From contig CM097885.1 in assembly GCA_044892525.1 (NCBI GenBank), positions 204,414,001 to 204,478,000 of the forward strand: DNA of 64,000 nt. The letters run 5' to 3'. The notes beneath the pieces were generated by a model. It saw only the letters and a program-made list of their open reading frames with translations, was not told the DNA's origin and searched no databases. Numbering within the stretch: position 1 is the first letter of the stretch; every line of letters starts with the position of its first letter. Shown here one piece after another: positions 9,485 through 62,182 of this stretch. Both the position numbers and the translations under genes were made by a program. The stretch is from Schmidtea polychroa (taxonomy: Eukaryota).

Positions 9485-10175
9485 CTATTTGATGAGCAAG
9501 TTCCTGTAAGTGTCATTATATTTTGTCGTACGCGGCCCAGTCTGGCAAGTATAATGGCTAATGGAGTGACAATAGAAGATTCAGAAACCTTCGTACAAAC
9601 TGACATTGAATGCCGCCGAGGATATCCACGAGAATTGATAGGACTGATAGTCATATTGAAATTGATCATTTGATTATCTATTAAGCAGTTTTTATCAACA
9701 GACGCAAGAGTTTCCTTGATATGCTTGTCTTTTTCCTCTTCTATGATGTGATTGGCTTCGACTATTGAATTGTCATTTGTTAATGGGGTTGATTCATTGC
9801 ATAAATTGGGCTCAGTTAAAGTGATATCTTTGTCTAAATTAGTTCTGCCCGGTGTCAAATTAAACACGACTTGTCGTTTACGATGGGGAAAACAAGATTT
9901 GAAACGTCGCCGATGAGTTTTCATTGGAATTGTCGAAACGGTTTGTGTTCGGCTCTCATCCGATGAATGGTGGAGATCTTGATGAAGAAGTTGAACATAT
10001 CCAGCTGACGAGCGACGACGTCCTTCGAATAATTCGCAAACATTTGCATGAAGATCTGCAGCCGAAGAATCAGTTTTACTTTTTGATAACGATATATTCT
10101 CATTTGGTTTTTGTGGACATCCACAGAGACACCACATAGTCCTTTTATACTCACGTTTTCCACTGTTATATTCCA
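9485..10175 (-). CDS. PDE4: Exon of a PDE4/dunce-like cAMP phosphodiesterase (N-terminus plus UCR1)
   Basis: RRHS...IVTPLAIILARLGRVRQNI resembles PDE4 UCR1 (RRES...IVTPFAQVLASLRTVRNNF); acceptor tttag before 10175, donor ag/gtaag after 9485; in-frame ATG at 10137. Downstream exons not identified. Confidence 0.65.
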
Positions 10176-10566
10176 CTAAAAATCATTTTTATCTACAGAA
10201 AATGTGAAATAAAAGAAAATTAGGTGAAATTGTAATGAATGAATTATTTTTCAGGTCTACTTTTGAAGCTGTCTTTAACGAGAGAGAGTTAGTTTTTCAT
10301 CCAATGAGATTTGCTAAATTTTGTAAATTCAGTTTTTTCTTTGATTTTTTATCATCTCTGACAATGATAGATTTTAGAGAGAATTTCCAAGCAGAATTTT
10401 ACATACACAGATATATAACAAGTGTAGAAATGTATTTTAGAAACTTTGAAAATGAATTCTCACTTGAAAATAATCGTAAGTCTTTAAATTCGGTTTTTGT
10501 ATGTCTTTTTAAGTTAAAATTTCAAATTTTGTTTTAATCGGGTATTATTAATTGCAAGATATGTAT

Positions 10567-24168: not shown

Positions 24169-26403
24169 TTACGATCTTCCGAGAACTGGTCGAGAAGTGC
24201 TCAGTGGTGCTGTTGGAGTATTAACGGAAGGCGCAACCGTCGATATGGTTGGGAAAACAGCTGCTTGCGAGGTTTGCGCGACAAATGACGGTTGAAATGG
24301 TTGAGAAAATTGATTGAGTCGGCTTGGAGTAGTTGGAAGATAAACTGGTTGTATATAGAATTGTTGTGGAGTACTGTTGTCATAGCGACCACTGGTGTTG
24401 GTGGATGCACTTGGTTGTATTATTTGATGGTAAGGCTGGTGAATGGAAGAAAATGTATTCGCCGACTGTTGGGGTGAATTAGCGGATGCTGCGTGCGATG
24501 CTTGGGGCATATTTAAGAGTAGCGGTTGGTAATACTCTAAATTTGGTATCATATGATGATAATTGATAATTTGCGGTTGATTCGATGGTTCTGTAAGAGG
24601 CTGGGTTGAAACCGGTTGAGATTGAGGAATTTGAAGCGGTTCTGTTTGGTTACGCAGTTCTGAATATCGTTTTGGCACAAATGATTGAGTCGGTCGGTTC
24701 TGATGGGATTTACTATCGAATTGTGGAACAGATTTCTCACGAGCGAATCTCGGAGCTGGAGGATTGTAAGAATTCATTGGACGTTTCTGTAATTGATTGA
24801 TTTCTCTGTCAGTCAACGGTGGCATTTCTTCAATAACATCTTTAAAATCGCAATTAGCATCCCATTCAAATTTTGAGTTGGCCCAGTCGGGGATATTTTG
24901 TCTGTTTCGATTTATCGATTGAGATATTCCGGGAGATTTTTCTCGTTCGTAATTGCTGTCCGAGAATCTCTGTTGAGATTTAGAATAGTTTTGTTGAGAT
25001 GAATTGCTCCCTTCACGTTGTTTAGGCAGATAATTATTTTTGCGTTGGAAATAATTTCCGGATTTTCGGTGTGCCACGTAACTTTTTTGAAGAGACATGT
25101 CGGTAAATTTTTGGTTAATGTTTCGTTTAGGCGTTTCTTGTGCAAGTTTCCGGTTTTGATTGGTTTGTTCGGATTCTTGAACTTTCTTAGCCAGATAATT
25201 GTCCAATTCACTCGATTCGATTTGTTTATCGTTATTTGCATCGTTACGGCGATAATTCTGATTTTCAAAGGTCCGAGATTGATAAACTCTTTTGTTTGAA
25301 TTATTGCTAATACTCTCGATTTGCCTAGTGCCAAAATTGTCAAGATTTACCGTAATCTTTATGTCAGTATATTCCGCTATTTGGCTATATTTACTTGGAG
25401 GCTTTGGAGCTTTTTTTGGTTTAACTTCCGGAGAATAACTTGACCTGTAATTTCTATTTTGATTATAATTACGATTGTAGTCTGTACTCGATCGATTCCA
25501 AGAATTATACTGAGGCTCATAATAACTATAATCATAATATCCACTGTTTCCATAATAATAAGAATTATAGTTATCGTAGTCATCATAATATTCATAATCA
25601 TAATAAGATCTTTGTTTATAATTTTGATGCTTATAATTAATTGCTTTATTATTTTTCTTTCGATTTTCTTTGAATTCCACATTATCGTTCTTATGTCGAA
25701 TATCGGCGCCATATTTATTGATTAATTCTATTTTAGAAATAGGTTTTTGCTTCCTTTCATCATAAAGATCATGTGACCAAACTTCGTTTGTTTTACTATG
25801 TACATTTTTTGCATTCTCGCTTGTTTTTTTGGGTTCGCCAATTTCAGAATCTTCTAATCTTAGATCATGCATATAAAATTTTCCATTTGTTGGTATAAAT
25901 GTTGGGTTATTAATATCTTTTGATTCAGGGTCACGCTTGTTATCTTTAGATACATGATTTTCTATAATGTATTCTAGATCTTCTTCACACTGTTTTAAGC
26001 CTTCTTCAGTTACTTCTGCTTTGGGTAATTCTTGTACACTTTCCGCTTGCTGAATATATTCGGCATCATATATCCAATTATCTTTACTTTCATCCCATGA
26101 ACTGGTTTCTTCGTCAGAACTTGGATTTTCACGACATGAACCTGGCCGAATATCATCGTCATCATCATCATCATCAGGGCAAATTTCCACGGGATCTAAA
26201 ATTTCTTTTTTATCATATTCATCGATTTTATCTTGATTTGTACACGATAAAAAAGATTTCTCGGAATCATCATCTTTCATTGGTACATTAGTTATTCCGT
26301 CAATTACAGAATTTACACAGGACTCAAAAGATTTATCAGAATCAATATTATCAGTTTCTTTTAAATTAGCACTTTCAATTTTATTTTCTTTGTTATCAGT
26401 CAT
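24169..26403 (-). CDS. CASC3: CASC3/Barentsz (MLN51) exon-junction-complex protein, 744 aa, uninterrupted ORF
   Basis: Btz/SELOR motifs NPTFIPTNGKFYMHDLR and WSHDLYDERKQKPISKIELINKYGADIR; acidic N-terminus, low-complexity Q/P/S C-terminus. Confidence 0.85.
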   Translation of the reverse strand: MTDNKENKIESANLKETDNIDSDKSFESCVNSVIDGITNVPMKDDDSEKSFLSCTNQDKIDEYDKKEILDPVEICPDDDDDDDDIRPGSCRENPSSDEETSSWDESKDNWIYDAEYIQQAESVQELPKAEVTEEGLKQCEEDLEYIIENHVSKDNKRDPESKDINNPTFIPTNGKFYMHDLRLEDSEIGEPKKTSENAKNVHSKTNEVWSHDLYDERKQKPISKIELINKYGADIRHKNDNVEFKENRKKNNKAINYKHQNYKQRSYYDYEYYDDYDNYNSYYYGNSGYYDYSYYEPQYNSWNRSSTDYNRNYNQNRNYRSSYSPEVKPKKAPKPPSKYSQIAEYTDIKITVNLDNFGTRQIESISNNSNKRVYQSRTFENQNYRRNDANNDKQIESSELDNYLAKKVQESEQTNQNRKLAQETPKRNINQKFTDMSLQKSYVAHRKSGNYFQRKNNYLPKQREGSNSSQQNYSKSQQRFSDSNYEREKSPGISQSINRNRQNIPDWANSKFEWDANCDFKDVIEEMPPLTDREINQLQKRPMNSYNPPAPRFAREKSVPQFDSKSHQNRPTQSFVPKRYSELRNQTEPLQIPQSQPVSTQPLTEPSNQPQIINYHHMIPNLEYYQPLLLNMPQASHAASANSPQQSANTFSSIHQPYHQIIQPSASTNTSGRYDNSTPQQFYIQPVYLPTTPSRLNQFSQPFQPSFVAQTSQAAVFPTISTVAPSVNTPTAPLSTSRPVLGRS

Positions 26404-27519: not shown

Positions 27520-28320
27520 GTCACATGAGGTATACCGATAAGCTACCAGATGAAAGGAGTAGTACAACTGCCACTTCCTGTTGTATTAGTGTTGAAAGAG
27601 AGAAAATAGCTTGACAGCCGTCAGAGATAAAAATGGAACAGTCGGGGAAGGCAGGAAAAATAAAGTGGAAAAACACTTGATTATATTGAGTGCCACAATA
27701 TAAGCAAGCTATATAAAGAGAAACTATCAGAGACAAAATTTGACAAAATTAGACAAAGAGTGACGCGAAATTGAGACGAAACGTGAGAGACAAAAGCGAG
27801 ACAAAACTCACGCGAAATTGAGACAATTTGGAAGACAATTTGAGACAATTTGAGAGATAAAATTATTGGAGAAAAATTTGACAACGTTGGACGAAACGTT
27901 GTTGGAGAAATAATTGTGAAAAATAATTCTAGAGAAAATGATTGTGGAGAATAATTATTGGAGAAGAGTTGAAGAAAAGAATTAGTGAAAAATAAAACGA
28001 AAAGAAGTTACTTGAGTACTTGAATAAATTTGTGAAGAAGTTCAGAGAAAGCAACCAGCTCAAAATCCCAGTTGATAAACCAATCAGTAATTTGTGATCT
28101 TTTAATCCAGTGTTCTACGCAAGTGCTATTACTCACTGAGTGTTGTAATAAGCATTGTATAGTCACCAAGTAGAGTGTTGAATTGATTGTCAATGTAAAG
28201 TGAAAGTTTATTTGTGATAATCAATAAAGATTTCTGTTGTCAAGTGTTATTTGTGGATCGTATAAAGACACGCTTGGAGTCAGAGTAACATTTAAATTTA
28301 TCACCAACCCAATAACCCAA
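27520..28320 (+). repeat. Diverged solo-LTR-like relative of the 981-bp LTRs at 44877 and 52710
   Basis: Shares gacagc(c/t)gtcagagataaaaatgg(a/g)acagtcgggga...aaagtggaaaaacac and acacgc(t)ttggag(t/c)caga...tcaccaac; boundaries approximate. Confidence 0.65.
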
Positions 28321-33294: not shown

Positions 33295-34620
33295 CCAGGG
33301 GCCCTCTGGACCACATACCCCTCCCCCACACCCCCCGGGAAATTTTTTTTTAAATAAAAGGTCAAGGTCAAGGTCATTTTTTTTTGTTTTATTAATTGGC
33401 CCAGCGGGCTCACACTTTTTTTCATCCCAAAAACTAATCTTCCCGCCAACGGATTTTTCTGAGCGATAGCTCATCTTAAAGACCAGTGCAAGACCTTTAA
33501 GATGTGCTATAGGTATTTTATATATCTATAATAGTTTTAATGTTATTAACATTTGATGACCACCATCTTTTCAAAGTTAAATTATTATTATTTTTCAAAA
33601 TATTATTAAGTGGCCTGGCGGAGTCATACTTTTTTTCATCCCAAAAATTAATGTTCCCGCCAACAGATTTTATTGGACGATACCTCATCTTAAAACCCAG
33701 TGCAAGACCTTTCTAATGAGATATAGATTTCTATCATACTATGCCTCATATTTTTAGAACGATGCCTCAATCGATGCCACATATTTTTAGAACGATGCCA
33801 CATATTTTTAGAACTATTACGTAATCGATGCCACATATTTTTAGAACGATGCCTAATATTTTTAGAACGATGCCACATATTTTTAGAACGATGCCTCATA
33901 TTTTTAGAACGATGCCTAATATTTTTAGAATGATTACGTCATATTTTTAGAACGATGCCTAATATTTTTAGAACGATGCCTAATATTTTTAGAACGACGC
34001 CTCTTATTTTTAGAATGATTACGTCATATTTTTAGAACGATGCATCTTATTTTTAGAATGATTACGTCATATTTTTAGAACTATTATGTAATCGATGCCT
34101 AATACTTTTTAGAACGATACCTAATATTTTTAGAATGATTACGTCATTATTTTAGAACGATGCCTCATATTTTTAGAACGATGCCTCTTATTTTTAGAAC
34201 GATGACTCACCCTATGACTCATAATTTTCCAAAATATTATTAATTGGTCCAGAGGGCTCACACTTTCTTTCATCACAAAATATAATGTTCCCGCCAACCG
34301 ATTTTATTGGACGATAGCTTATTTTAAAGCTCTGTGTAAGAACTTTCTAATGAGATATAGAGATAATTATAATCATTATTAATTTAAAAGATATTAACGC
34401 CCGCGTGGAAGATGTTATTATTATTATATACTCCGAGTTTATCCGACAAGATATTCTGTCCCCCTATGGGTACTACACACATGGGTACTGCTCACAAGGG
34501 TACTGCTCACGCTCAACAAGTCACATGGGTACTGTTCACAAAGTTACTACTAAAAATAGTCAAGACAAAACTTTAACAAAGAAATTCTTAATATTATACT
34601 TTAAATATACACTAAAACTA
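33295..34620 (+). repeat. Copy 2 of the dispersed modular repeat, expanded with three ~120-bp direct repeats and a minisatellite
   Basis: ggtcaaggtcaaggtca at ~33360; ~120-bp units at ~33395, ~33600 and ~34235 (ttcccgccaac core); terminal module at 34425-34545 with repeated gggtactgctcac. Confidence 0.75.
33741..34207. repeat. 21-bp minisatellite (catatttttagaacgatgcct), about 20 units with variants
   Basis: Head-to-tail units, variant atgattacgtcatatttttaga, no unique spacers. Confidence 0.9.
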
Positions 34621-35735: not shown

Positions 35736-38700
35736 AACTGAGGAAGAACCCTATGAAAAAGAAAACTATAATTGGGATAACTTTAACCATGTAGATAAAT
35801 TTGAACAACCATTTATATCCTCTTCATCTTTAGAGTATATAAAAAGAAATAAACAAAAAATAAAAAACTCAATGGATGATGCTATAAAAAAATTTGGTAA
35901 ATCAAGATTTAATGTTATCATATATAAAATTAGAATCCACTCAAAATATTGGAGGGGTGAAGATGTAAACACAGCAGTCCTAGACCGTATTATTGAAACA
36001 CCTTATAATTATTTATTCTCAACCCAGGGATTTAAAAAAAATTAAAGATATTATTCATAAAGTTGAAGAAGAGCATAGAGTGGTTGAACAAGAATTAGGA
36101 GAGTCAAACCTAAAATTCCATTCATTTCAATCACTTGAAATCGAATATTGGAGAGGAGCACCTCCAAACCCTAAATCATATATCCCTACCCCCTTTACTT
36201 CACATTATAAATATTCGAAATAATGATAATAAATGTTTCCAATGGTCAATACTAGCACATTTACGTCCTCAAGAAAATCATAAAGAAAGACCTGCAAAAT
36301 ATAAGCAATATGAAAATGAATTAATATATCCAAAAGGATTTAAACACCCAATGAAGATTGAATACATTCCAAAATTTGAAAAATTAAATAATATTAAACT
36401 TAACATTTATGAATATATTGGTCAGGTGGGTGATAGGAAACACATTATCCCAATTCACATTTCAAATATGGAATTATTAGAACAAGATAAAAATAGAGAA
36501 ATATATCTTTTAATATTACAAGAAAAACAAACTTATAGGGAATATGATGATCTAGATGAGGAAGAACAATATTTAAATATTCAAGAGTTAAATCTTGAAG
36601 AAGAGCAAGAAGAAGACATTGAGATGAAACAATATTATATCCTCATAAAAAACTTTCAAAGTTTTATGCGATCAAAAAGTCACCACAGTGGTGGAACAAC
36701 ATGTAAACGTTGTCTATATTATTCAGCCTCAAACATTGCAGCATTTAAACATGAAAGATTATGTTTTAAGAACCTACCAGCATTAATTAAAATGCCAAGC
36801 AAAGAAAAGTCTAACATGCACTTTAAAAACTTTTCAAACTTACTAGAATCAGTGGGAGTAATATATGGAGACTTTGAAGCTATAAATATAAAACAAGATT
36901 TAGAGCAAGAATATTTAAAAATAATAGAAAAAAATAATCTATTAGAATCTTGGAGGAACGACCCTCGGGATAATCAACGAGGATGGGAAAGTATGAAAAA
37001 CTTTCTAGACTTAAATAATAAATCTTATACAGTAAAACTAACAAAACAAGTAGCATCAGCTTATAAACTATTTTTTAAAAGTAACTACCCCGAACTTATA
37101 GAATCTAAAGAATATTCATATAGAGGAATCACAGAAGAAGAAACTCTAAATCATTTTCTTAAAGATATAAATGATTTAGAACATCAAGTATTTAAAATAT
37201 TAAAAACAAACTTTCTAATAAACTTTTCAGAACAACAATGGGAAGAATATGAAAACGCAACAACTTGTTGGATGTGCAAACAACCATTTGAGAATTCTGA
37301 AAGAGGTCATTCTGAAGGTCATTCTGAAGGTCATTCTGAAAGTCTTGAAGAGGAAGAACAAAGACTATTTCACGAAGGACAAGAAAGACATGAAAACATA
37401 AAAGTCCCAGATCATGACCACTTTAAAAAACTAAACAACTTTACGGGTGCAGCACATAAAAACTGCAATATTAATTGTAAAAGACCAAATTTTGTACCAG
37501 TTATATTCCATAATCTTTTTGGATATGACATCCACTTATTCATAAAACATTTAGCTGTAAATGCTAAAAACTCTTTCAAGGTTATAGGACTTACAAAAGA
37601 AAAATATAAATGTGTTCAATATGGACGATTGAAGTTTATAGATTCCCTAAACTTTCTATCAATGTCCTTGGATGGAATAGCTAAAACAATGAAACCAGAA
37701 GACTTCACCTACACAATAGAAAAAGTATTAGTAAAAAATAATATTCCCAGGAGGAATATAAAACCTGTTTAGCAAAGGGAATCTATCCTTATGATTATAT
37801 AGATTCTTTTGATCGTTATAATGAAACAGAACTACCAGGTCTAGAGGAATTCTTTTCAACATTAAATCAAACAGATATAAGTGACCAGGAATATACCCGA
37901 GCAAATAAAATGTATCAATTATTCATATGTAAAAACATTGGGGATTATACTGACATGTATTTATCATTAGATGTTTATATCCTTGCAGACTGTTTTGAAG
38001 GATTTTGCAAGGCATTTGAATTAAAACCCTACAACTATATAACATCTCCATCTCTAGCTTGGGATATATTATTATATACTATGTGGACCTCCAGCTCTGA
38101 GTCCATAGAACTATTAACTGAACTCGACATGTTTAATGTACTTAAAGAAAATATTCGAGGGGGTGTTAGCTCCGTGATGGGAGACCGAGAAATCACTGCA
38201 AATAACTTCCTATCTCTCTATAAGAAATTCTTTAGTGAAGATCCAAATGCAGACTATATACAAATAAAAACAGAAGAAGATTCAAAATTAATAAAGGAAG
38301 GATTATCAAATCCATCAGAAATAATGTATATAGATGCAACTGCTCTATATTCAGGAGTAATGACTCAATACCTTCCAATTGATAACTTCATTCAGGTTGC
38401 TGTCCCAGAAGGTGCTGTCCCAGAGGAAAAGGATCTACTCATGAATCAAATATTATCAACAGAAAAAGATTCAGAAGTGGGATATATAATAGAATGTGAT
38501 TTAGAATACCCCAATGATATAAAATATATTACTAGATACTTTCCATTTGCACCAGTGAAAAGGAAAGTAGATTCCAATGAATTATCATCCCAACAAGATA
38601 GACCTACAACCACAAAACTTTTATGTGATCAAACTGATAAAACTTATTATCTTTGTCACTATAGGTTGTTACAATTTTATCTTTCTCATGGGATGAAAAT

Positions 38701-39793
38701 AAAAAATATTCATTCTATAATAAAGTTTTCCCAAAGACCATTTATGAAAAAGTTTATAGAGGGAAATATCAAATCTAGGAATGAAGCAAAAAGAAATGGA
38801 AATGCTTTCCTAGACATGATTTATAAGCTTTTAAACAATTCAGTCTTTGGGAAAAAATGGAAAATGTTGATAAATATACTCGAGTAGAATTACTAACAAA
38901 TAGTCCAAAGGATTTTGCAAGATACAATCGAATGCTTTCAAAACCTACATTTAAAAATGCAGAAGTCTTTTCAGATAACCTAGTAGCTGTTGAACTAAAA
39001 AATAGTGAAAAGACTTACAATAAACCAATCTTTATAGGATATTCAATTTTAGAATTATCAAAACTACAAATGTATGAAACCTATTATGATATTCTACTAC
39101 CACATTTTAAAAATAGAATATCAATGCATGCTATGGATACAGACAGCATGTTTTTAAAAATATATACTAAAGACCTAAAAGAGGAAATATCTGAAAATGA
39201 AATCCTAAGCAATTTAATAAATTCATCTGGAGAATTATTCACCTTTAAAGATGAAAAACCAAATACTCCAATAATTGATGCTGTCTTTATTAGGGCTAAA
39301 CAATATTCATTAGAAATGATTGATGCTCCAAAGATGATAACCCAAACAATTAAAATCAGGACAGCAACAGGGGAAATAGACTATACATTTGATATACCAG
39401 TATTAAAACTTAAAACATATAAAGATAATAAAAATAAAGGTATAAAGAAATCAGTTTCTAGGAATATACCACATCAAGACTATAAGGATATTCTAAATAA
39501 AAATCAATCAGATAAAATAGTGCAAGTTCATCAATTTAAATCTGAGAAGCATAACATGTATTTAGAGGAATCGAATAAAATATCATTATCTAATTATGAT
39601 GATAAGAGGTATATTTTATCAGATTTAAAAAAGACACTCCCAATTGGTAATGACATGATTCCACATATAAAAAATTTAAAAGTCTTGAATGATTTATATA
39701 ATACAAACATAACAGACCTTCAACTATATCAAGTTCAAATACTCTACACAGAAACTCAATCTTTCGATGGTATAAATATATATATATATATAT
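35736..39793 (+). pseudogene. Polinton set B protein-primed PolB with an endonuclease VII-like insertion; several frameshifts
   Basis: IINIRNNDNKCFQWSILAHL; IYGDFEAI; CWMCK...DHDHF...GAAHKNCN; IFHNLFGYDIHLF; FIDSLNFL; YIDATALYS; KLLNNSVFGK; MDTDS; YDDKRY; frameshifts near 36020, 36195, 37750 and 38870. Confidence 0.92.
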
Positions 39794-40060
39794 ATATAGA
39801 GTTAAGTATTTAAATACTAATCCTGATTATATCCAAAGCCTATTAGAAGAAGAATTTGAATCTCATAGATTAGAGATTCAAAGATTATTAATCATCAATG
39901 ACTGAAAGTGACTGAATGTTAAAAAAGTAATTTAAAAAATCAATACTTGAAAACTTAAAGTCTTTAACTGATGACAAGATATTATTAATTGATATTATTA
40001 AAGTTTTGCATAAATTAAAAAATAAACCATCTATTTCAATAATAAAAATTTTTTATTTTA

Positions 40061-40819: not shown

Positions 40820-40945
40820 TGTTGGGACATTAATTAATTATTCAACACAATAATTTTAAAACAATATTTAAAAACAATTTAATTTGTTTAAATATTGTGT
40901 TTGTATTAAAAAATAAATTTTTTGAACACCACAACACGTGTAACT

Positions 40946-41863
40946 ATGAGTCTTACAAATGGTGTCAGAAACTCCGAAGTTGACCATGTCTCGGTCAAAA
41001 TTCCGGCCATTTTTCAAAATCAGAGTCTATGGTTCAAGCAAGTAGAGGCCAGCTTCAAGATATCCAGGATTACAGAAGAGACCACAAAGTATTTTTATTT
41101 AATTTCAAATCTCCCAACAACGTTGCTAACAAAGTACGAACACTTACTGGACTCAGAAACCGAACTTCCATACACTACTCTGAAGGAAGCAATCCTAGCT
41201 GGTTTTGAACTATCAAGGACAATATCACTAACTGACCTGATGAGAGACGACTGCCTGGGAGATCGATCTCCATCGGAAGCGCTTCAGCACATTACAGGAC
41301 AAATACAGAGAATAGACACATCCATGGACCCATTTAACAGTCCTATATCTCGGGAATTATTCATGCGACTACTACCAAGATCTGTTCAAGACATCCTATT
41401 ATCGATGCCATCGACGGACCTTCGAAAATTAGCGATCACAGCAGACAGAATAATGATATCAAAGCGTCAATCAGTGAAGGCAATTGAACACGAAGATTGC
41501 AACAATCAAGAAATAGGAGACAAGACGAGAACAATCATGGAACTGCAGGAAGAGATAAATGCAATACGACAACAATTAAACAATAAAAGCACCGGTAAGT
41601 TATGTTTTTATCATAGTAAATTTAGGCATAGGGCGATGAAATGTCAACCGCCATGTGAATGGAATGCAAATCAGAACGACAACTATCAATCGGGGAAGTA
41701 CAACAGAGAGAAATATCAAAATTTCGAACCGTCAAACATATCCTCAAGGAACAACAACAACAATTTCAACAAAAACAGCAACTTCAACAAAAACGGTAAC
41801 GTCAACAGCAACAATTTCAACAACCACAGAGAGAACCAGGGAAACGAGAGAAGGTTTCATTGA
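40946..41863 (+). CDS. gag: CsRn1-type Gag
   Basis: KIPAIFQNQSLWFKQVEASF...TKYFYLI; CHCC motif CFYHSKFRHRAMKCQPPC. Confidence 0.9.
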   Translation: MSLTNGVRNSEVDHVSVKIPAIFQNQSLWFKQVEASFKISRITEETTKYFYLISNLPTTLLTKYEHLLDSETELPYTTLKEAILAGFELSRTISLTDLMRDDCLGDRSPSEALQHITGQIQRIDTSMDPFNSPISRELFMRLLPRSVQDILLSMPSTDLRKLAITADRIMISKRQSVKAIEHEDCNNQEIGDKTRTIMELQEEINAIRQQLNNKSTGKLCFYHSKFRHRAMKCQPPCEWNANQNDNYQSGKYNREKYQNFEPSNISSRNNNNNFNKNSNFNKNGNVNSNNFNNHRENQGNERRFH

Positions 41864-44818
41864 ACCCGAACAGTGAAACCTACAAAATCATATCCTCTTT
41901 CTCGGGACAAAACAACTCACAAATATTCGAAATACCAGCAATCATAAATGGAAAACAAGTTGACTTTCTCATAGATACAGGCGCTGATCTCAGCATCCTT
42001 CCCGCAAACCGCTTCAAGCCTGATAGAAATGGAGAACATCGATCTTTAGTATCCGCCAACAATTCATCAATCACACCACGGGCAGAAAACAATTGAATTT
42101 ACTATTGAAGGATTCAGAACTAAATTTATATGGTCTTTTGCTATAGCCGGCATATCTCGTCCAATTTTAGGTGCAGACTTCCTGGCCCATCACAAAATCG
42201 ATGTTAGTTGTCATTCCAGATCAATATGTTGCCCTAGCAGTAACGAAAGAACAGAAGCGCGGAGAAGCCAATGTGCCAAGATCTGTGCTACAATCAACAA
42301 AGAAACCACATTAACCACGAAACTACAAATTATCACCAATGGTTCCCCTGTAGCTCAAAGACAAAGACCACTTTTTGGAGAAAAATTAGTTGCAACAAAG
42401 AAAGAGTTTGACAGACTCTTAAATGAAGGTGTGATTCGGCCAAGCAAGAGTGACTGGGCATCTCCATTAGTAGTGGTTAAGAAGCCGTATGGGTCATGGC
42501 GGCCTTGTGGAGACTACAGAATGTTAAATGAAATAACCCAGCCTGACAGATATCCACTTCCAAGAATTCAAGATTTACTGAACAAGATAAACAACCCTCA
42601 TGTATTCACTAAATTAGATTTGGAAAAGGCATATCATCAAATTCCGATTTGTGACGGAGACATTTCAAAGACAGCAGTCATAACACCCTTTGGATTGTTC
42701 GAATATACGAAGATGCCTTTTGGACTTCGAAACGCATCTCAAACGTTTCAGAGACACATGGACAACGTACTCCGAGAACATCAGGAGCATTCCTTATCCT
42801 ATATTGATGATGTTCTGATATTCTCCAAGACTGAAGCAGAGCATAAAGAACACGTGGCAAGGGTGATGGCCAGTCTTCAAGCCGCTGGTCTCACAATCAA
42901 CCAGAGCAAATGCGAATTCCAAACCGAAAAAGTAAATTTTTTGGGTTTTGAGTTAACAAAACAAGGAATAAAACCCTCTGAAGAACGCACGTTGGCAATT
43001 AGCAATTTATAGAAGCCAACTAACAGTCAAGATTTACGACGTTTTATTGGTGGCATCGGCTATTATCACTGGCTAATTCCAAGGCTGTCAGATACACTGA
43101 GTCCACTGCATGACTTGTTACAAGAGTCGGTCAATAAAAAGGAAGATCTCTTATGGCAAGACTGCCATACACACGCTTTCATGAGTGCCAAAAATTCGGT
43201 ACGTGAAATCAGCAACGTTTCATATCCTAACCCGTCCAAGCCATTCCTATTATGCACTGACGCATCTTCTAAAGCAATTGGAGCAAGTCTAAGTCAAATC
43301 AACGAAGAAAATAAATCATTTCCAATTGCTTTCTTTTCGAGGAAATTAAATCTAACCGAACAGAAGTATTCTACCTTTGACAGGGAGTTGCTGGCAATAT
43401 TCTTATCTATAAAACATTTTAAGCATTTCTTAGACGGTTCTCATTTCACAGTCATGACGGACCACAAACCTTTACTACGAGCTAGACATATGAAAGATCC
43501 ATCGCCAAGGCAATGGCGAATAATCGAATACCTTGATCAATTTGATTTCACCATCGAATTCATCAAAGGGGAAGATAATGTAGTCGCCGATCTCTTGTCC
43601 AGACCATGCAGTAATCAAAACCTACAAGTATCAACGGTGGAAATTAATTTCGTCGAATTCACGAAAGAAAGGTTAAAAGAAGAACAAAGGAAAGATCAGA
43701 CCTTATCTACACTGAAAAATGCAAGTCTCCAGTTATGTAGTACTACGGATGACATTCTCATTGACAACTCTACAGGGGAAACCAGAGTAGTACTGCCAAA
43801 AATATTCCGACATCAAGAATTTCTAAGAATTCATAACATATCGCATCCAGCATCCAAACCAACGATAGAACTGATCAAGGCGAGATATGTGTGGCCTCAG
43901 ATGAAAAGCGACATCAGAGAGTGGTGTAGACAATGTCAAAGATGTCAAAGTGCAAAAATAACAAGACACACACATGCTCCTTTAGGTACTATAGAAACCA
44001 AAGGAAGGTTCATTACAGTCCATCTAGATATAGTGGGTCCTCTTCCGAGCGTCGATAACAAGAGATATATCATGACAATGATAGACCGAGGAACGTCATG
44101 GGTTGAAGCAATTCCTATATATGATATCACAGCAGATATGATCATAAGAACATTTGAAAGAGAGTGGATCAGTCGCTTTGGTGTTCCAGAAATTGTCATA
44201 ACAGATCAAGGAACACAATTTGAATCAGAAAAATTCTCCAATTTCTGCAAGATAATGGGAATCGAAAGGAGGCGAACAACAGCCTATCACCCTCAATCCA
44301 ATGGGAAGATAGAAAGATGGCACAGAGCCATGAAAAACTCAATAAGAGCCGCATCAGAAGACTCCTCCAAGATGTGGGCTCATGATCTCCCCAAGATTCT
44401 ACTCAGTCTAAGAAACTGCACGAAGTCCAATGGGTCTCCATCAGCAGCGCAACTCACATTCGGGTGTCGAGCCAGATTACCCGGAGATTTTGTCATTAGT
44501 GAACCAACATTAACCGATATCGAAGAGAAGTTGACGTCGATTCAAGAGGAAATCGACTCACAACTAAGTAACAAACGAACAAGCCAACCAAAAGAACATA
44601 GTTTTGTAAGCAAACTATTAGTTCACTGCAAAAGAGTGTGGCTTCGATCTGAATTTAGGAAATCGTTAGAAGATCCGTACACGGGACCATACGACGTCAT
44701 AGAAAGATCCGATGACAATAAAACGGTAAAAATCAAAATCGGAGACCAAGTAAAGAATGTTAGCATCGACCGTCTCAAGCCATGGATTGGAACGGACGAA
44801 TTGGCTCCGCAATCTTAA
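41860..44818 (+). pseudogene. pol: Pol (protease, RT, RNase H, integrase) with a frameshift near 42090 and a TAG at 43010
   Basis: FLIDTGADLS; WASPLVVVKK; MPFGLRNASQTFQ; YIDD; CTDASSKAIG; TDHKPL; HNISHP...CQRC; HLDIVGPL; TDQGTQFES; YTGPY. Confidence 0.95.
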
Positions 44819-46035
44819 GGGGGAGTTGTGTTGGGACATTAATTAATTATTCAACACAATAATTTTAAAACAATATTGTTGAGGATACCTAAATAATAAT
44901 TCATAAAGAAATAAATAAAATTACCTGGGGGAAGATCGCCATGACAAACGGGACGATCTATAGAGACTCAGAAAAGAAAACGGAAGTGAAAAGAAATCAA
45001 AAATGAGAAAGAGAAAGGAAATAAAAGTTATCAAACAGGAAAATAAAAATCAAGGTCCGTACTAATTAATTAGTACAAAAAGGAAAAAGGAATTTTGAAA
45101 TCAGGGAAAAAGGAAAACAACAATATCCTTATCTCGACAGCTTGCCGGTGATAATAGAATTGATGGGAGAAGGCGGTCGAACAAGAAAGGAAAAAGGGAA
45201 AAACAACTTGACAGCTGTCAGAGATAAAAATGGGACAGTCGGGGAAAGCAGGAGATGGAAAGTGGAAAAACACTCAATTATCTGGAGTGCCACAAGCAAA
45301 AACAACTATATAAAGAAAACGGGTGGACGAGAAATCAGAACAAATTGTGAACAGATTGGGAATAGATTGGGAACAGATTGAAAATAGATTGGGAACAGAT
45401 TGAGAATAGATTGGGAACAGATTGAGAACAGATTTAGAGGCAAAAGTGGAGTAAAATTAGAGACGACAGCGTAAAAAGAGGAATCAAAGCAGAGTGAAAA
45501 GAGAAGTGACAAGAATCTTTTATAAAATTGAATATAAAGTAAAAGTGGAGTAAATAAGTTGTGTGGTCAAAGCAAATAGAACAATCGATCAATATATCCT
45601 GTAATTGAGTAGTTGACGGCTAGTGATTATTGTTGTGGTTACAGAAAGGGCTATTCTTCACGTAGTGTCGAAATAAGCTCTGTGTGGTAAATTGGTTTAT
45701 AGTCAATTGGTTGTAATTGAAATTTGTACTATTACGTGTGGATATTAATAAAGCTTATTGTGTTCGAGAGTGTTGAATTGTGATTTAATAAACACGCTTT
45801 GGAGCCAGATTAAAGGTTTAAATTTAAAAATATTGTCACCAACTATATAACACAACATATTTTGGTGAGCCCGACGTGATCAAAAGTTGGTGAAGAGATT
45901 GTGAAAAAGAAAATTGGAAAAATAAAGTGTGTTAAATTGAAATTATTAGAGTGATTATGGAAAGGTAAATTGTTTATTGTAATAATAATTTGAGATTTAG
46001 ATTTTGTGAAATTTGAAAAGAAATAATTTATTAAA

Positions 46036-49000
46036 GTGAACCGATATTATTTACGAAGCCAGAGTAAAAAGGAAGCTACAATGAGCAGTGAAGATTTACC
46101 AGTTTCAGTTATTAAAGAAAATAATGATTTTGCCAGTTGTCAAAGATTGCCAGTAGAGCAATATGGAGGAGATCCAATTATTTTTGTTGATTTTATGAGC
46201 GATTACTATATGTATGCAACGGCTTATGGATGGTCTCAAGCAATAATGATTCAAAGATTACCCTTATATCTTAAAGGAGCTGCTAGAGAGGTTTGACAAC
46301 AAATCGACAGGAAAACAATCGGCAATGATTGGGCCAAATTAAAAGATGCATTGGCTGCTAAACTTATTGGAGGAGATATAAAGAGATTAATGCGTCAGAA
46401 ATTTTATAATAGAGTTCAAAATCCAAATGAAACAGTGAGCGAATTTGCATATCATTTATCGACCCTTTCCAGCAAATCCTTTGAAGAAGATTCGAAACAA
46501 CCAGGATTAGCCCAACAGATGCAGGAACTGATTCAAGATCAATTTTTGTCCGGAGTAAATAAAGAAATAAAAACGGCATTATGTTTTGTAGAGTATGACA
46601 ATTTCGATGAACTAGTTAAAAAGGCAATGAAAATCGAATTGAATCTAAAGAGCTCTAAAAGTAAATCTGAGGTATTTGCAATAATTCCAGTACAAAGAGA
46701 GAGATCAGTAACCCCAACCCACGACAATTGGGAATCAGGAAATAGATTTCAACGATCAAAGAGCCCATCACCCAAATGGAGAAACGATAATAATAATATG
46801 AACAGAGCAAGCCAAAATTCACCCGGCACCGAGAGAGCTAAAGTTATTCAGTGTGATATTTGTAAGAAAATTGGCCATTATACAAATCAGTGTTGGTTTA
46901 AAAATAATTCTGAAAGAGTACCCAGGAGATTGAGTCCCGATTGGCAGAGAGATAATAAAGGAACGAATTTGCGGAGAGCAATTCCTAATGTGAAGTCAAA
47001 CTTTAATGAAGTACAATGTTATCGCTGTGGTAGAAAAGGACATGTTTCTAGAAATTGTTTTTCAAGATCGAGATCACCATCAATGTCACCATCACCACAA
47101 AGAGATAATGTGAATTTAAATGGACAAATTCAATGTCATTTATGCAGAAATTATGGGCATATTGCAAGATCTTGTCCCAGGAATTCCGATAAATTTCAAA
47201 GACCAATTTTGAAACGAACGATTAGATTTCAGGATGAAAACCAATCAAAGAATAATGTTGCTTATGTTCAGAAAGATAAATTTGGAGAAAAAATTGAGAA
47301 CGATGTCAAACAATTGAATCAAAAATTGAATAAATTGATGGCGAAATTTGAATCAGATGAAGAAACAGATTCTCATATGATAACAAAACGAAAAGTGAAG
47401 ACAGATGAATCCAAACTTGATGATGTTACAAGAAACAGAATTAAAACGGATATGCAAAGTGAAAAGAGTACAATACTTATTGCTAATGTCAGAAAATTAG
47501 TAACAGAACCTGATGCAAATTTTCAGAAATTGACAGAAGTGTTGATGATGCTAACGGAAATACCGTTGAGTTTAACCAAAATTAAAACTGTTATTAAACT
47601 TTGTACTGAATGTTATGCAGGAAGTGTGGAAAAGCGAGATGTATTTGAAAAGTATATGAAAGAATTTGGCCAAACTCTACGAAAAATCAAATGGTTAGAC
47701 CCGATATTTATTAAAACAAATACATTAGACGGCACCAAATCCGAGTATCAAGTTGAAGCATACGGAAAAATACGCGAGTTGAAAAGAGAAATAATGCACA
47801 AATGTGAAGTTTGGGCAGTAGAACTTAAATTTATGGGCCGAGTGTTGGAAGACGACGAATTTTTGATAGATTGTGGATTGATCCCCGGTGTTGAAAATGA
47901 GATACAAATAATAAGCATGATTGCCAATGAAAAACCAGTCAAATATGATGTCGATAAAATTAAATTTGAATTAAATGAAGCATTGATCAAGGAAGACACA
48001 GGTGATATTATTGATAAATTAAATAATATTTTGAATTTAGAATATGAAGTGCAAGATAAATTAAAAATTTTAGATTGTGTCAGACCCTATGTAAATTATG
48101 ATAATAAATATAGTGAAATGATAAAAAAGCTTATTCGTAAATTTGGACAAGAATTTAGAGAAAAAGGAGTTTATATTGAGCCATTCGTAATAATGTTAAA
48201 AATAAATGATCAAGAAGTGGAATGTACCAACGAGCATTGGTGTACGAAAGTGAGTAAACTACGACGAAGAGCAGCAGATATTATGGGCAATGATGGAATA
48301 ATTGTATTGGTATACAAAGGTTTTGAGTTAGATGATGATGAGTATTTATTTGATTGTGGCTGCGTACCACGAAAATTTGATAAAAATGGATCTTTGGCGA
48401 ATCAGGAAACGTTTATTAATGATTTAGTTGCGATGAAACAATTTGAATCAAACGAAGTAGAAGAAAGCTTTAAAATGGAATTACCAAACTGGAAAAATGA
48501 GATAATGAGTAATGATGATGAGATGCACGATGAACAAGAAATGAGAAGAGATGAAATAGAAAATGAAACTGGAGAAATTATTGTTAAAAATGAGATGAAG
48601 ACTGAAAAAGATGAAATAGAAAATGAAGCGGAGCAGATTATTGTTGAAAATGAAATGAGAACTGAAGTTAAAAATGAGGCATATATGACCAAGATGACGA
48701 TTGATAATGATATTAAAGAAAAACAATGCAGAAATTTGTATGAATTAAGATGTAAAATAATACAGAAATTTCAAGAGGAGAAAGATCAGAAAGACTCAAA
48801 GGAAACTGAGAAAATTGTACGTGCTCTAGTAAACGAATTATATGGTGAATCAATAGAAAGAATACAAGTTGAGAAATATGTGAGGAAAATTGCAAAGAAA
48901 ATTAAAAAGAGATTTTGTGTAGTGTTAAAACAAGCACAAGAAAGTATGGAATTTTGTGATGACAATGTGATAACTGAGATGATGACAAGAAAAATAGATA

Positions 49001-50247
49001 GAGATATGGTATTAACAATTATGAGTTATATTTTGTTAGAAATCGGAACCTATGATTGCTCAGATATGGAAAAACAAGAGGAAATAATTAAAACGGCAAG
49101 TAAAGTTTTACATAAACATGTTGGCAAATGGATAAAAGAGAATGGAGGTTGGAAGAAGCTGATTAAACAAAAATTTGAACCAGTTGTAAAAATAAGAGAA
49201 AATTATGATGGTGTATTAAAAAGAAAACCCGTAAAAGTTCCGTTTTTAATGTCTATGATCTTAATATTATGTGCAATTATAACTAAAACCTCTTCGTTAA
49301 TTGCATATGATTGCACTCAAATAAAGATTGGGAAAGTTTATTCTATGGTGGATTGGCAGTTCGCAACAAAATTAAAGACAATTCAAAAACTGTATAATTT
49401 CATACACATTCATCTTTGGACAAAAGTGTGGAGGAATCTTGTCGTAATAGAACCGATGATGAAGAAAGTTTATATGTATTGGACAGCCAAAGAACAACAG
49501 AAAATCAAAATAATTTTTCAATACCATGTAATTGAGATATTGAGTAAAGGAAAATCTTTTGTCAAAAATGGGAATCTACAGAAATCTTTTCATGGTTATG
49601 AAACCTGTACGAACAATCATTGGTCAAAATTAGAATCTAAAGCTGAAATAAAATACGTTAATAACAAAGGAAATCGTGTTCAAATGCAGATTTATAAAGA
49701 AATAATTGTATTTAACAAGACAAAAGTCGGAAAAGGGGTAAATGTTTTTATAAATGATAAAATTCAGGTAGTGTGGGACGAACATCGACAACAAGCAAAG
49801 AGTAGCCTTCAAAATTCAAAACCGAAAGCAACATTAAATGAATTAATGACAAGAATTATGCATTGCAAGCGAAAAACTAACGCTGACCGGTGGCATATTG
49901 TGTTAATCGAAAAAAGACATATTGATCTTCATAATAATAAATTCTTTGAGAACATAACTATTAATCAAAAGTTAAAGTTGTCATTGACATTCTCACGTGT
50001 AAAAAACAACAGTCTATCATTAAACAATGAAGAGAACTTATCTCGTAACAATTGTATTGAATTACTATTCATATGTATCATTGTGACAATAATAAGCAGC
50101 ATCCTACTCATCTATATCATCATCAAAGTTGAAAACAAAAGGAAAGAACAATCATGTTCATCAATCGCGATATTCAAAACCACAGACAATGATGTGGTTA
50201 GAAACATTTGTTTAGTAAGATATTATTATTGCATGTTATTGACCTAA
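46036..50247 (+). CDS. Gag-2xUBL-Bcl-2-like-TM-env-relic polyprotein with one in-frame TGA at 46294-46296
   Basis: Gag core (FYNRVQNPNETVSEFAYHL), three CCHC knuckles; UBL-like 47701-47890 and 48181-48370; BH2 WIKENGGW at 49129-49152; hydrophobic VPFLMSMILILCAIIT then LIAYDC; C-terminal TM ELLFICIIVTIISSILLIYIII. Confidence 0.8.
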
Positions 50248-51149
50248 AATTTCTTTCATACTCCTTCAGTGATCATTGCTTTATTTAAACAAATAATTGT
50301 ATAATATTTAATATTTCTAATGAATTTATGGATCATGTAATTTGATTGGGTAAATAATCACACACCGTCACGAAAAATATTTGGGTGTAAAAGTGAAAAT
50401 TGTTCAAATGCTTTTACGACAAAAGAAATTTAAAAAAAAAAAAAATTTTACAAAAGAAAATTCAAATTACCAAATTGAAGAAATTAAGAGAAACACGAAG
50501 CTGTATGAAAACTATGACAGAGAAAGAAGAAGTCGAACAGAGAAGAGCATAGTAGTAGAAGAAAATTTAAAAATACCGAATTGGACGAGAATAGGGAACG
50601 AAGGAATGAATGTATGGTTAATTGAGCTGAAGTGGAAGTCAATAAAAATAATACAGTATCCGAATAAAATTTAAGCATCCTCAATTACTTTATTTTGTTG
50701 TACCCTGAAAAATCTTTATAAAGCATTAAATTAATAATAAACGCAAGCTTAATGTGGTAATTAAAAAACTAAATAGTAAAGGCAACAAAAATCAATAATC
50801 AATTAAGTCATAAGCAATTAATATAGTGTAAAATTTAATTCAATAAAATATAATATTATATAGTATAATAAAAATTTCAATACTAATACGGTTGTAGTAA
50901 GAACCCTACGGGAGCTACTCAAATAAACAAAAATATGAAAAAATAAATATATATATAATTTTGAATTAATAAAAAAGGCCTTGAAGTTTCCAGATCACGA
51001 ACTTCGGGATCTGAAGACTTCATGGCAAAATTGCCTCGTCACCGGCAGCATGGCGTAACCAGCGTGAGAGGTAATTTAGAAAATAAATAATAAACCCTAT
51101 ATAGAAAGGAAGATGTAATAGTACGTAAGAATTATTTCATAGTATCATT

Positions 51150-51780
51150 ATTATTAATAAATTATTGTTGTTGTTGTCATCATCAGTATTATTATTAATG
51201 GTAAAATTATCGGTATTATCATTATGTTCATTACAATTATTATAGGTATTATTATTAATAATAATATTATTGTTATTATTACTATTATTATTATTATTAT
51301 TATTATTGTTATTATTGTTACTATTATTATAATTATTATTAATATTACTAGTATTATTATTATTATTATTTTATTATTATTATTATTGTTAATATAATTA
51401 TTATTTTTACTATTATTATTATTATTATTTTTTGTATTACCAATACTATTATTACTGAGATTATTATTATTNNNNNNNNNNNNNNNNNNNNNNNNNNNNN
51501 NNNNNNNNNNNNNNNNNNNNNNNNNNNNNNNNNNNNNNNNNNNNNNNNNNNNNNNNNNNNNNNNNNNNNNNNNNNNNNNNNNNNNNNNNNNNNNNNNNNN
51601 NNNNNNNNNNNNNNNNNNNNNNNNNNNNNNNNNNNNNNNNNNNNNNNNNNNNNNNNNNNNNNNNNNNNNNNNNNNNNNATTATAGGCATTATTATTAATA
51701 TTATTATTATTAGTAACATTATTATTAATATTATTCATCATTGTTGTTATAAAAAAAAATAAATAAATAAATAAAAAAAA
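51150..51780. repeat. (ATT)n/(TAA)n low-complexity tract with a gap
   Basis: Degenerate triplet repeats flanking an N run. Confidence 0.9.
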
Positions 51781-60945: not shown

Positions 60946-62182
60946 TCTTTCCACCATATAATTTCATTTCTATTTTCTTTTCTTCTAATATTAATGTATA
61001 TACTTTAGTTTTAAAATCAGAATCCTTTGTTATATGAAGTGTAACATCAACATTATTTATAGCTAGGCGATCATCTTGATCTGAAACATTTATACAAAAT
61101 ACAGAATATAAATTTTTGAAATCTTCTAAACTTAATTGTGGTTCAACTTTAAAATCATAACATGTTTCAATATAATTTAGATATGGGAATATGTTTTCAT
61201 TATTTTCAATATTAAATTCCATTCTATTTATTGGATAATAAGAACTATTTAATTGAATTTGTATTGATTTTAAATTATCATTTCCAATCTTTTGAATAAA
61301 CAAGTTGTTATTTTTATGGAATGATAAATCTACTTCTTTGAATCCAATAAAGATGAATCTCGGTCGGTATGCTAAATTTGCAACCTTTATAGAATATGTT
61401 GAACCCTCTGTCATACTAAATTCACTACAGACTCTATTTAAATAATTTACATTTATAGATTTGTTGGAATTTAATCTTTCAAGGAGTTTGATTTCAGATT
61501 GAGGATTTAAAGTCCATTCAGGTATATGTAATTGAAGTGTTGATAATTTTAATTTAGCTTTTGTATCTACACCTCCATAGAATAATACTTTATCAACTAT
61601 TACTCTATTACAAAGTAATTCTATAAAAACATTATGAAGTATACGGTTATAGTTTTGAAGGAATCCAAACAAGTGTTTTAATTCAAAATAACCTTCAAAT
61701 TTTTTAGATTTATAAAGTTCAACTCTTTTATGGTAACCATAATTTATATCTAAACCATCTTTATCTAAATCACCTTTATTAACATCAGGAATCCAACCTG
61801 TTAATTCTCCATATTCATTTTTATAATCACAACCAGTTAATATAAAATTTAACATTGTAGAATATATTCCTGGATGTAAAACAGTTTCAATTTCTGATGA
61901 TCCTAGTTTTAATCTCATGTTGGAGAATAAATTTGGAAAGAAATTATTTTCTTGGGTTATATCTTTGTTTGCTTCAATTTCTAATTCAATTTTCTAATAT
62001 AATTTTGCATTACAAATATCTATAGGATTTGATGTTTGAAGAGATTGAAAAACTATATCACCTGAACGATTTAAGTTTGCAATAGATCCCGAAGTTGGTG
62101 ATATTTTTAAAACATCAATTTTTTTAATTTCATGCATAAACTCTTTATTATAATCAAGATTTAATTTATTTTTATTAGCCAT
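60836..62182 (-). pseudogene. Polinton set B major capsid protein (hexon-like) with one in-frame TAG at 61994-61996
   Basis: LNRSGDIVF, PNLFSNMRLKLGSSEIETV, LKHLFGF, LQLHIPEW, PRFIFIGFK, IQIQLNSSYYP, FKNLYSVFCINVS; ORFs 61994-62182 and 60836-61918 are in the same frame. Confidence 0.88.

Follow-up and report, generated by a model that had tools for sequence, protein, structure and literature searches.

A young non-autonomous LTR retroelement of Schmidtea polychroa, probably Burro-like, with a single gene joining Gag to ubiquitin-like and Bcl-2-like domains

Introduction

The closest described systems are the Burro/GYPSM1 elements of the planarian Schmidtea mediterranea, in which three CCHC knuckles come after a typical Gag, modules of the MATH, BIR and ankyrin types are present together with a Ubi2/SUMO-like domain before BCL2, and an envelope (env) region homologous to mononegavirus-type fusion glycoproteins lies in frame between BCL2 and the protease (PR) (PMC6431247). 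This account is taken from the review of Arkhipova and Yushenova 2019 (PMC6431247), which sums up Jurka 2007 and Grohme et al. 2018, adds an HHpred analysis of its own, and proposes that the Burro domains meddle with host apoptosis and ubiquitination. For env-carrying gypsy elements of Platyhelminthes, the order Gag-Env-Pol was given in a 2026 survey (PMC13524379). Here, a window of 64,000 nucleotides from Schmidtea polychroa (assembly GCA_044892525.1, contig CM097885.1, positions 204,414,001 to 204,478,000, forward strand; all positions below are those of the window) was analysed around an open reading frame (ORF) at 46036-50247. A preliminary description, made from the letters alone, had read this ORF as a retrotransposon polyprotein fusing Gag to tandem ubiquitin-like (UBL) domains, a Bcl-2-like domain and an env-like module. 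The region is probably the only gene of a young, non-autonomous long terminal repeat (LTR) retroelement of a Burro-like lineage, i.e. of planarian-type Ty3/gypsy elements with the order Gag-cargo-Env-Pol. The architecture Gag-CCHC-UBL-BCL2-in-frame env is already published for planarian Burro/GYPSM1 and is not new; the novelty claimed for it, which the preliminary description had itself made to depend on there being no such known family, falls with that published layout (PMC6431247).

Like Burro/GYPSM1, the element has Gag with three CCHC knuckles, ubiquitin/SUMO-like domains upstream of a BCL2-like domain in one ORF, and an env start in frame after BCL2, in an AT-rich genome context. It differs in measuring 8.8 kb against over 30 kb for Burro/GYPSM1 (internal region up to 25 kb), in being devoid of PR, dUTPase, reverse transcriptase (RT), RNase H (RH) and integrase (IN), in giving no Pfam match to the MATH, BIR or ankyrin modules, and in its doubled unit of helices plus UBL. 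Of env, which in Burro/GYPSM1 lies in frame before PR, it has a signal and about 20 residues only, and an orphan stretch of 295 residues comes next.

Certain non-autonomous LTR retrotransposon derivatives, for example LARDs, keep LTRs, a primer-binding site (PBS) and a polypurine tract (PPT) without the polymerase genes, pol (Kalendar et al. 2004, cited in PMC6431247). With them the element shares intact ends, a target duplication, the absence of polymerase genes and near-identical LTRs, which implies enzymes acting in trans; unlike them, it has a long, almost intact Gag-cargo frame and not non-coding filler. Host-type modules are also carried by viruses, as exemplified by the Bcl-2 proteins of large DNA viruses, baculovirus v-ubi and the ubiquitin inserts of pestivirus polyproteins. 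The element resembles these carriers as a mobile parasite with host-type apoptosis and ubiquitin modules; unlike in the viruses, both modules are in frame with Gag, and the UBLs have no diglycine (diGly) end, so that neither conjugation nor pestivirus-style cleavage by hydrolases is expected.

Element structure and absence of pol

The whole retroelement spans 44877..53690 on the + strand (8,814 bp, including 521 masked N) and was delimited by its LTR pair, target duplication, PBS and PPT. Upon comparison of the window with itself, a direct repeat of 981 bp was found, 44877-45857 against 52710-53690, with 2 mismatches (99.8% identity). Its copies are the 5' LTR (44877..45857, +), with TG...CA ends, and the 3' LTR (52710..53690, +). 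Directly outside the pair, the 4-bp target-site duplication ATAT is present at 44873..44876 and again at 53691..53694. A PBS-like sequence, read from the letters, begins with TGG 5 bases past the 5' LTR (45863..45879, +), and a purine run abutting the 3' LTR represents the PPT (52696-52707, +). Since the LTRs are nearly identical and the target duplication is clean, the insertion is recent: the element is complete at its ends and was recently inserted.

Within each LTR, an 11-bp tandem array of 8.8 copies (45338-45434 and 53171-53267) lies upstream of AATAAA strings. Consensus matches read from the 5' LTR sequence gave as candidates a TATA-like string at 45307-45315 and AATAAA at 45747-45752 and 45787-45792. 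Elsewhere in the window, a 130-bp stretch at 27595-27724 is 84% identical to positions 317-444 of the 981-bp LTR and is probably a fragment of a related LTR.

For the interior of the element, PR, RT, RNase H and integrase were searched with Pfam in every frame of 44877-53690, and no match was obtained. The 3' internal region (50248..52709, +) is AT-rich and non-coding; it contains simple repeats, and N masking affects three runs (51472-51678, 52198-52377 and 52383-52516; 521 bases in total). The element contains no ORF of >100 aa of real sequence 3' of 50247. A pol hidden in the masked bases was ruled out because 521 bases are far too few. The env-PR protein of a metagenomic relative (L001, introduced below), used as tblastn query against all frames of the element, gave nothing past 49353. 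The rest of env and all of PR, RT, RH and IN are thus gone from the element, and with its LTR pair, target duplication, PBS and PPT and no polymerase genes it classifies as a non-autonomous LTR retrotransposon. LTR anatomy, Pfam and tblastn together show what the preliminary description had missed, namely that this copy has no pol and forms a separate, nested, non-autonomous element. As it has no pol yet was recently inserted, it was presumably copied with enzymes from other elements; autonomous relatives would supply this copying in trans.

The element was inserted into the 3' LTR of another, compact LTR retrotransposon, the ~140-bp LTRs of which start at 40820 and 44829. Because the same site is uninterrupted in the paralogous 5' LTR of this host element, with a single ATAT at about 40866-40869, that LTR could be used as an empty-site control. 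The RT, RH and IN sequences at 42431-44818 were considered as the pol of the studied element and rejected, as they belong to the other element with its own ~140-bp LTRs, one of which is the insertion target.

Reading frame and Gag region

The Gag-cargo polyprotein gene runs from the first ATG to the stop codon at 46081..50247 (+), with one in-frame stop in Gag; residue numbers given below refer to the uninterrupted 1298-codon stretch of the ORF. The frame begins with a Gag capsid-like region and three CCHC knuckles. Two units follow, each made up of four helices and a UBL, then an acidic repeat (2 x 20 aa), the Bcl-2-like domain and a hydrophobic segment; the C-terminal stretch contains a transmembrane (TM) helix. 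All motifs quoted in the preliminary description were recovered in the translated frame. In the window, with about 70% A+T, the other two frames of each ORF segment contain roughly 20-45 stops, and the length of the polyprotein frame far exceeds what chance would give. In tblastn, the relatives match in one frame throughout, and no frameshift was seen; the interruption of Gag by one stop stands as described before. Owing to this stop, a full protein from the Gag start codon is unlikely to come from this copy.

The Gag capsid-like region (46081..46851, +) is 36% identical to the Gag of L001 (E = 7e-29), and its family profile matched the Drosophila Arc1/Arc2 capsids (E = 0.022 and 0.19) and SCAN domains, which is a weak but coherent signal. 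Downstream, the nucleocapsid region (46852..47175, +) gave Pfam zf-CCHC matches in 3 stretches (37.6 bits), and pattern matching located three C-x2-C-x4-H-x4-C knuckles, in agreement with the three claimed earlier. The reported absence of a protease was likewise reproduced, there being no match to a protease family in Pfam over the ORF. The sole D-T/S-G tripeptide, a D-T-G, sits in a helical linker, and a hidden protease was therefore rejected. Further downstream, the acidic 20-aa repeat, also claimed before, was recovered by Tandem Repeats Finder at 48549..48666 (+; period 60 nt, 2.0 copies, 86% matches).

Relatives

Residues 290-1298 were subjected to an exhaustive HMMER search against 1.84 billion representative proteins, which yielded 12 relatives, all from metagenome assemblies or UniParc. 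P0001/P0008 and P0007/P0010 are close pairs among them; at the 20-30% identity of the remaining ones, synonymous sites are saturated. Protein searches by word index, run with the whole ORF and the Bcl-2/env-start alignment, returned no match, a result explained by their length filter and their need for shared 5-mers. When metagenome and viral contigs were scanned for the locus, with the ORF, the UBL alignment and a Bcl-2/env alignment as queries, no relative could be confirmed, and exact look-up of the ORF in public assemblies gave none on record.

Two of the relatives come from the metagenome contigs L001 (ENA ERZ25039515 contig_89787) and L002 (JGI 3300027940 Ga0209893_1000438), which show 20-36% identity to the window. 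Their proteins, P0009 (L001) and P0003 (L002), have the order Gag-CCHC-helices-UBL, and P0003 extends into the Bcl-2-like region. The helix+UBL unit is duplicated in P0001 and P0005, as in the window, while the Bcl-2-like end, the hydrophobic segment and the env start are found in P0007, P0010, P0011 and P0012. In the L001 gene at 7961-12709, the Bcl-2 end is succeeded by a PF24664 match (E = 2.2e-90) spanning 616 residues and then by a pair of aspartyl protease domains, and the gene is followed by an ankyrin ORF; the corresponding PF24664 match in L002 has E = 8e-36. Between L001 and the window, homology was obtained with E = 7e-29 for Gag, 6e-14 for the UBL unit and 4e-8 for the Bcl-2/env junction. 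Element and contigs are thus collinear through Gag, helix+UBL, the Bcl-2-like domain, the hydrophobic segment and the env start; L001 and L002 differ in having one helix+UBL unit and a full PF24664 fusion glycoprotein, where the element has two units and an env cut down to its start.

Two of the relatives have unusual contexts. In the 601-aa P0004 (UniParc UPI00060EF8E5), a related CCHC and post-knuckle helical region is joined to a phosphomevalonate kinase domain, and this entry is probably a chimeric gene model across a retroelement fragment and a host gene. On the P0007 contig (ENA ERZ27313623, 7233 bp), the ORF with the Bcl-2 end and env start stops about 60 residues into env, and an ORF with zf-CCHC and one with PR-RT-RH-IN come immediately after it; the arrangement represents either a further insertion nested in env or a shorter variant of the family.

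Tandem ubiquitin-like units

Unit 1 (47479..47925, +) consists of a four-helix segment (47479-47688) and UBL1 (47704-47925), and unit 2 (47950..48378, +) of a four-helix segment (47950-48165) and UBL2 (48184-48378). The duplication of a unit of roughly 160 aa, noticed before from the letters, was borne out by BLASTP of unit 1 against unit 2 (E = 1e-7, 28% identity over 100 aa). UBL1 scored above the Pfam ubiquitin (PF00240) cut-off (27.5-31.3 bits against 25.4), and its phmmer matches in the PDB were almost all UBLs: ISG15, Rad23, ubiquilin, NEDD8 and BAG6. For UBL2, sequence support consists of its paralogy to unit 1 (E = 1e-7) and a weak UHRF1 match only. The UBL family profile, searched against the PDB, gave only weak UBL matches (UHRF1, E = 0.026) and a spurious top match.

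Residues 376-700 were modelled by AlphaFold2 with the aid of six relatives; the model had a mean pLDDT of 72 and showed four helices followed by strand-strand-helix-strand-strand, twice, with pLDDT 70-85 for the beta-grasp units. Foldseek placed ISG15 and linear di-ubiquitin on top, with both UBLs aligned (E from 8e-6, about 1e-5; probability 1.0) and 60 matches at E <= 1e-3. Among viral models, giant-virus ubiquitins, baculovirus v-ubi and the ubiquitin inserts of pestivirus polyproteins were matched, one single-domain viral ubiquitin with a target TM-score of 0.80 and an rmsd of 2.3. Two tandem UBL domains with a predicted beta-grasp fold, as proposed before, are thus well supported by sequence comparison and modelling. 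In the alignment, the D-D-E-Y/F-L-x-x-x-G block of the unit is kept in all relatives. A C-terminal diGly is absent from UBL1 and UBL2, in line with the preliminary description, and from the relatives P0001, P0002, P0005 and P0008. The UBLs are predicted to be non-conjugatable because they have no diGly end, and for the same reason a role as cleavage sites for host ubiquitin hydrolases was rejected.

Bcl-2-like domain

The helical domain at 48721..49185 (+) is homologous to solved Bcl-2 proteins over its BH1-to-BH2 region, with a strong BH2. When the single sequence was searched with phmmer against the PDB, Bfl-1/A1 ranked first (E = 0.001) and all of the 60 listed matches were Bcl-2 family members, over about 42 residues. 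A seven-member family profile lengthened the match to about 70-86 residues, reached Bcl-xL residues 124-212 at E = 1.9e-4, and again gave only Bcl-2 family members among its 60 listed matches. The best conserved block of this region across the relatives is the tryptophan/glycine motif. In the printed profile alignment, the BH1 region aligns to Bcl-xL without the conserved motif residues. Of the preliminary assignment, the domain as such is thus supported as Bcl-2-like on sequence grounds, with the strong BH2 and the profile match, and its fold is unconfirmed by the model; the proposed BH3-like stretch is present in frame, but its alignment columns show no conservation among the relatives.

Hydrophobic segment, env remnant and C-terminal stretch

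Hydropathy revealed two hydrophobic segments, at residues 959-988 and 1230-1262 or, more narrowly, near 961-983 and 1236-1260. The first of these (49231..49299, +) follows the Bcl-2-like domain at the position of a Bcl-2 tail anchor and is homologous to the signal-peptide end of env in relatives. In L001, the Pfam env match (PF24664) begins inside this segment, at profile position 5 of 653, which identifies the segment as the env signal sequence. By alignment it is clearly the segment that starts env in the relatives. It leads into an env N-terminus remnant (49300..49359, +) of about 20 residues from A-Y-D-C, common to P0007, P0010, P0011, P0012 and L001, in which the env start of the relatives aligns with A-Y-D-C ... 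G-K-x-Y-S of the window; homology to the relatives stops at 49353. The earlier suggestion of a segment serving both as Bcl-2 anchor and as start of an env relic was thus upheld for the transition into the shared A-Y-D-C start, but not for the env relic as a whole: env homology covers the signal-like segment and about 20 residues, and the other 295 match nothing. PF24664, the Monjiviricetes-type fusion glycoprotein, had no match in the window even at E <= 10.

The orphan C-terminal stretch (49360..50247, +) comprises 295 codons with a TM helix at 50056-50130, about 36 residues beyond it, and 4 N-x-S/T sites. Its frame is free of stops, whereas the other two frames contain 29 and 28, and shuffling gives an expectation of 25.6 (minimum 13 in 2000). 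No relative of the stretch was found in Pfam, the PDB or the 1.84-billion-protein library, and AlphaFold2 modelled it as unstructured (pLDDT about 30).

Origin and function

Several points weigh against the reading of the locus as a Burro-like element with Bcl-2-like and ubiquitin-like cargo. An autonomous partner with matching LTRs was not found within the window, nor was a second copy of the exact element in the searches described above. We infer the Burro kinship from collinear architecture and from anonymous Burro-like contigs, Burro1-4/GYPSM1 having been compared by description only, and the statements on cargo function and topology made below are likewise our inference. For the Bcl-2-like domain, Pfam Bcl-2 (PF00452) stayed below its cut-off of 31.4 bits with both the whole ORF (17.9 bits) and the domain piece (23.0 bits); AlphaFold2 gave a weak model of eight helices (pLDDT 50-79), which leaves the fold unconfirmed; and Foldseek of this low-confidence Bcl-2/tail model was non-significant (E 0.14-0.75, rmsd about 20), with mostly Bcl-xL, Bfl-1 and Bak on top. 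Together with the short span of the single-sequence PDB match, about 42 residues, these results would suit a lysine-rich helical region that resembles one short motif by chance. Such a coincidence is very unlikely, given that the profile of seven family members extends the match well past that motif and retrieves the Bcl-2 family throughout its listed matches, that the tryptophan/glycine motif is the best conserved block among the relatives, that even the non-significant Foldseek list is led mostly by Bcl-2 proteins, and that BCL2 was reported independently in Burro elements (PMC6431247). A different question concerns the last 295 codons, which might be a shortened, diverged and still used envelope, so that the element would be a satellite of the type Gag-cargo-miniEnv and not a simple deletion product. 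The frame has no stop against an expectation of about 26, starts with the signal and N-terminus of env common to the relatives, ends in a strong TM helix plus about 36 residues, and offers 4 N-x-S/T sites; yet beyond the first ~20 residues it resembles neither PF24664 nor the env of L001 and L002, is without a relative among the 1.84 billion representatives, and is modelled as unstructured. LTRs this similar also leave little time for an unselected frame to gain stops, so that the open frame alone is weak evidence of use, and a functional envelope appears unlikely.

As to descent, the family could be independent of Burro, with host UBL and Bcl-2 genes captured convergently in different lineages of gypsy elements. 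This would account for the missing MATH, BIR and ankyrin modules and for a length of 8.8 kb instead of over 30 kb, and it is helped by Burro being known here by description only. The order Gag-3 CCHC-UBL-Bcl-2-signal-env start is, however, collinear with relatives that continue into env and PR, and one of these, L001, is homologous through Gag, the UBL unit and the Bcl-2/env junction alike and also has an ankyrin ORF; because the module junctions are shared, common descent is argued for, and separate capture is considered quite unlikely. A host gene, i.e. a domesticated Gag-Bcl-2 fusion that is no longer mobile, would be in keeping with the long open frame and with the conservation of modules over relatives of 20-30% identity. 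It is extremely improbable in view of the near-identical LTRs, target duplication, PBS and PPT that flank the gene, its nesting in another transposon, the stop in its Gag, and the env, PR and pol genes adjoining the relatives. The Burro-like, non-autonomous element could further be imagined as a selected 'cargo satellite' of its lineage, compact and trans-mobilised, reduced to Gag, the doubled UBL unit and a Bcl-2-like domain anchored in the membrane, and with the fusion glycoprotein replaced by a new small membrane protein without relatives. This stronger version is unlikely; if true, it would mean that selection maintains the cargo and not the replication enzymes.

In intact members of the family, the polyprotein would be made from the LTR transcript, the internal hydrophobic segment would act as env signal sequence, and the part downstream of it would enter the endoplasmic reticulum (ER). 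Gag-UBL-Bcl-2 would thereby be left on the cytosolic face, held at the membrane by the same hydrophobic segment, comparable to the signal sequence that anchors the capsid protein in flavivirus polyproteins and to the tail anchor of cellular Bcl-2 proteins. By analogy with the Bcl-2 homologues of large DNA viruses, the Bcl-2-like domain would most likely restrain the death of cells expressing the element, and the UBLs would most likely be docking modules that engage ubiquitin-binding machinery of the host, for instance the proteasome, shuttle factors or ESCRT. The anti-apoptotic/ubiquitin-decoy role put forward in the preliminary description is a hypothesis of the same kind.

Gag-fused apoptosis and ubiquitin modules are unusual in retroelements, and the functional question was raised for Burro in 2007-2019 already. 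To this the present copy adds a compact, recent example of what survives the loss of pol and env, namely Gag, the UBL units, the Bcl-2-like domain and the signal/anchor segment, as well as clear evidence for the identity of the hydrophobic segment behind the Bcl-2-like domain with the one starting env in relatives, and a duplicated helix+UBL unit common to some relatives. The orphan terminal stretch and the duplication of the UBL unit are minor curiosities. The element is useful for annotation and provides a short sequence on which structure and expression of the cargo can be studied.

Genomic surroundings

The compact host LTR retrotransposon occupies 40820-44876 and 53695-53789 and encodes a DUF7041 Gag, RT, RNase H and integrase at 40922-44818, its pol region being broken into several ORFs. 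Maverick/Polinton-like genes were found on both sides of the retroelement nest, at about 36135-39813 (+) and at 55746-61918 (mostly -). They include a protein-primed DNA polymerase B (37910-38887), an A32-like ATPase (58340-58876), an integrase whose N-terminus carries a phospholipase A2-like domain (59126-60544, -) and a capsid of the double jelly-roll type (60836-61918, -), and the nest seems to be located within a large DNA transposon, a Maverick/Polinton remnant. Farther upstream, a single ORF of 744 codons at 24169-26403 (-) has a CASC3/Barentsz (Btz) eIF4AIII-binding domain (Pfam E = 3.5e-15) and is presumably a host gene. A 21-bp tandem repeat array of about 12-20 copies lies at 33741-34209, flanked by 141-bp repeats (33373-34361).

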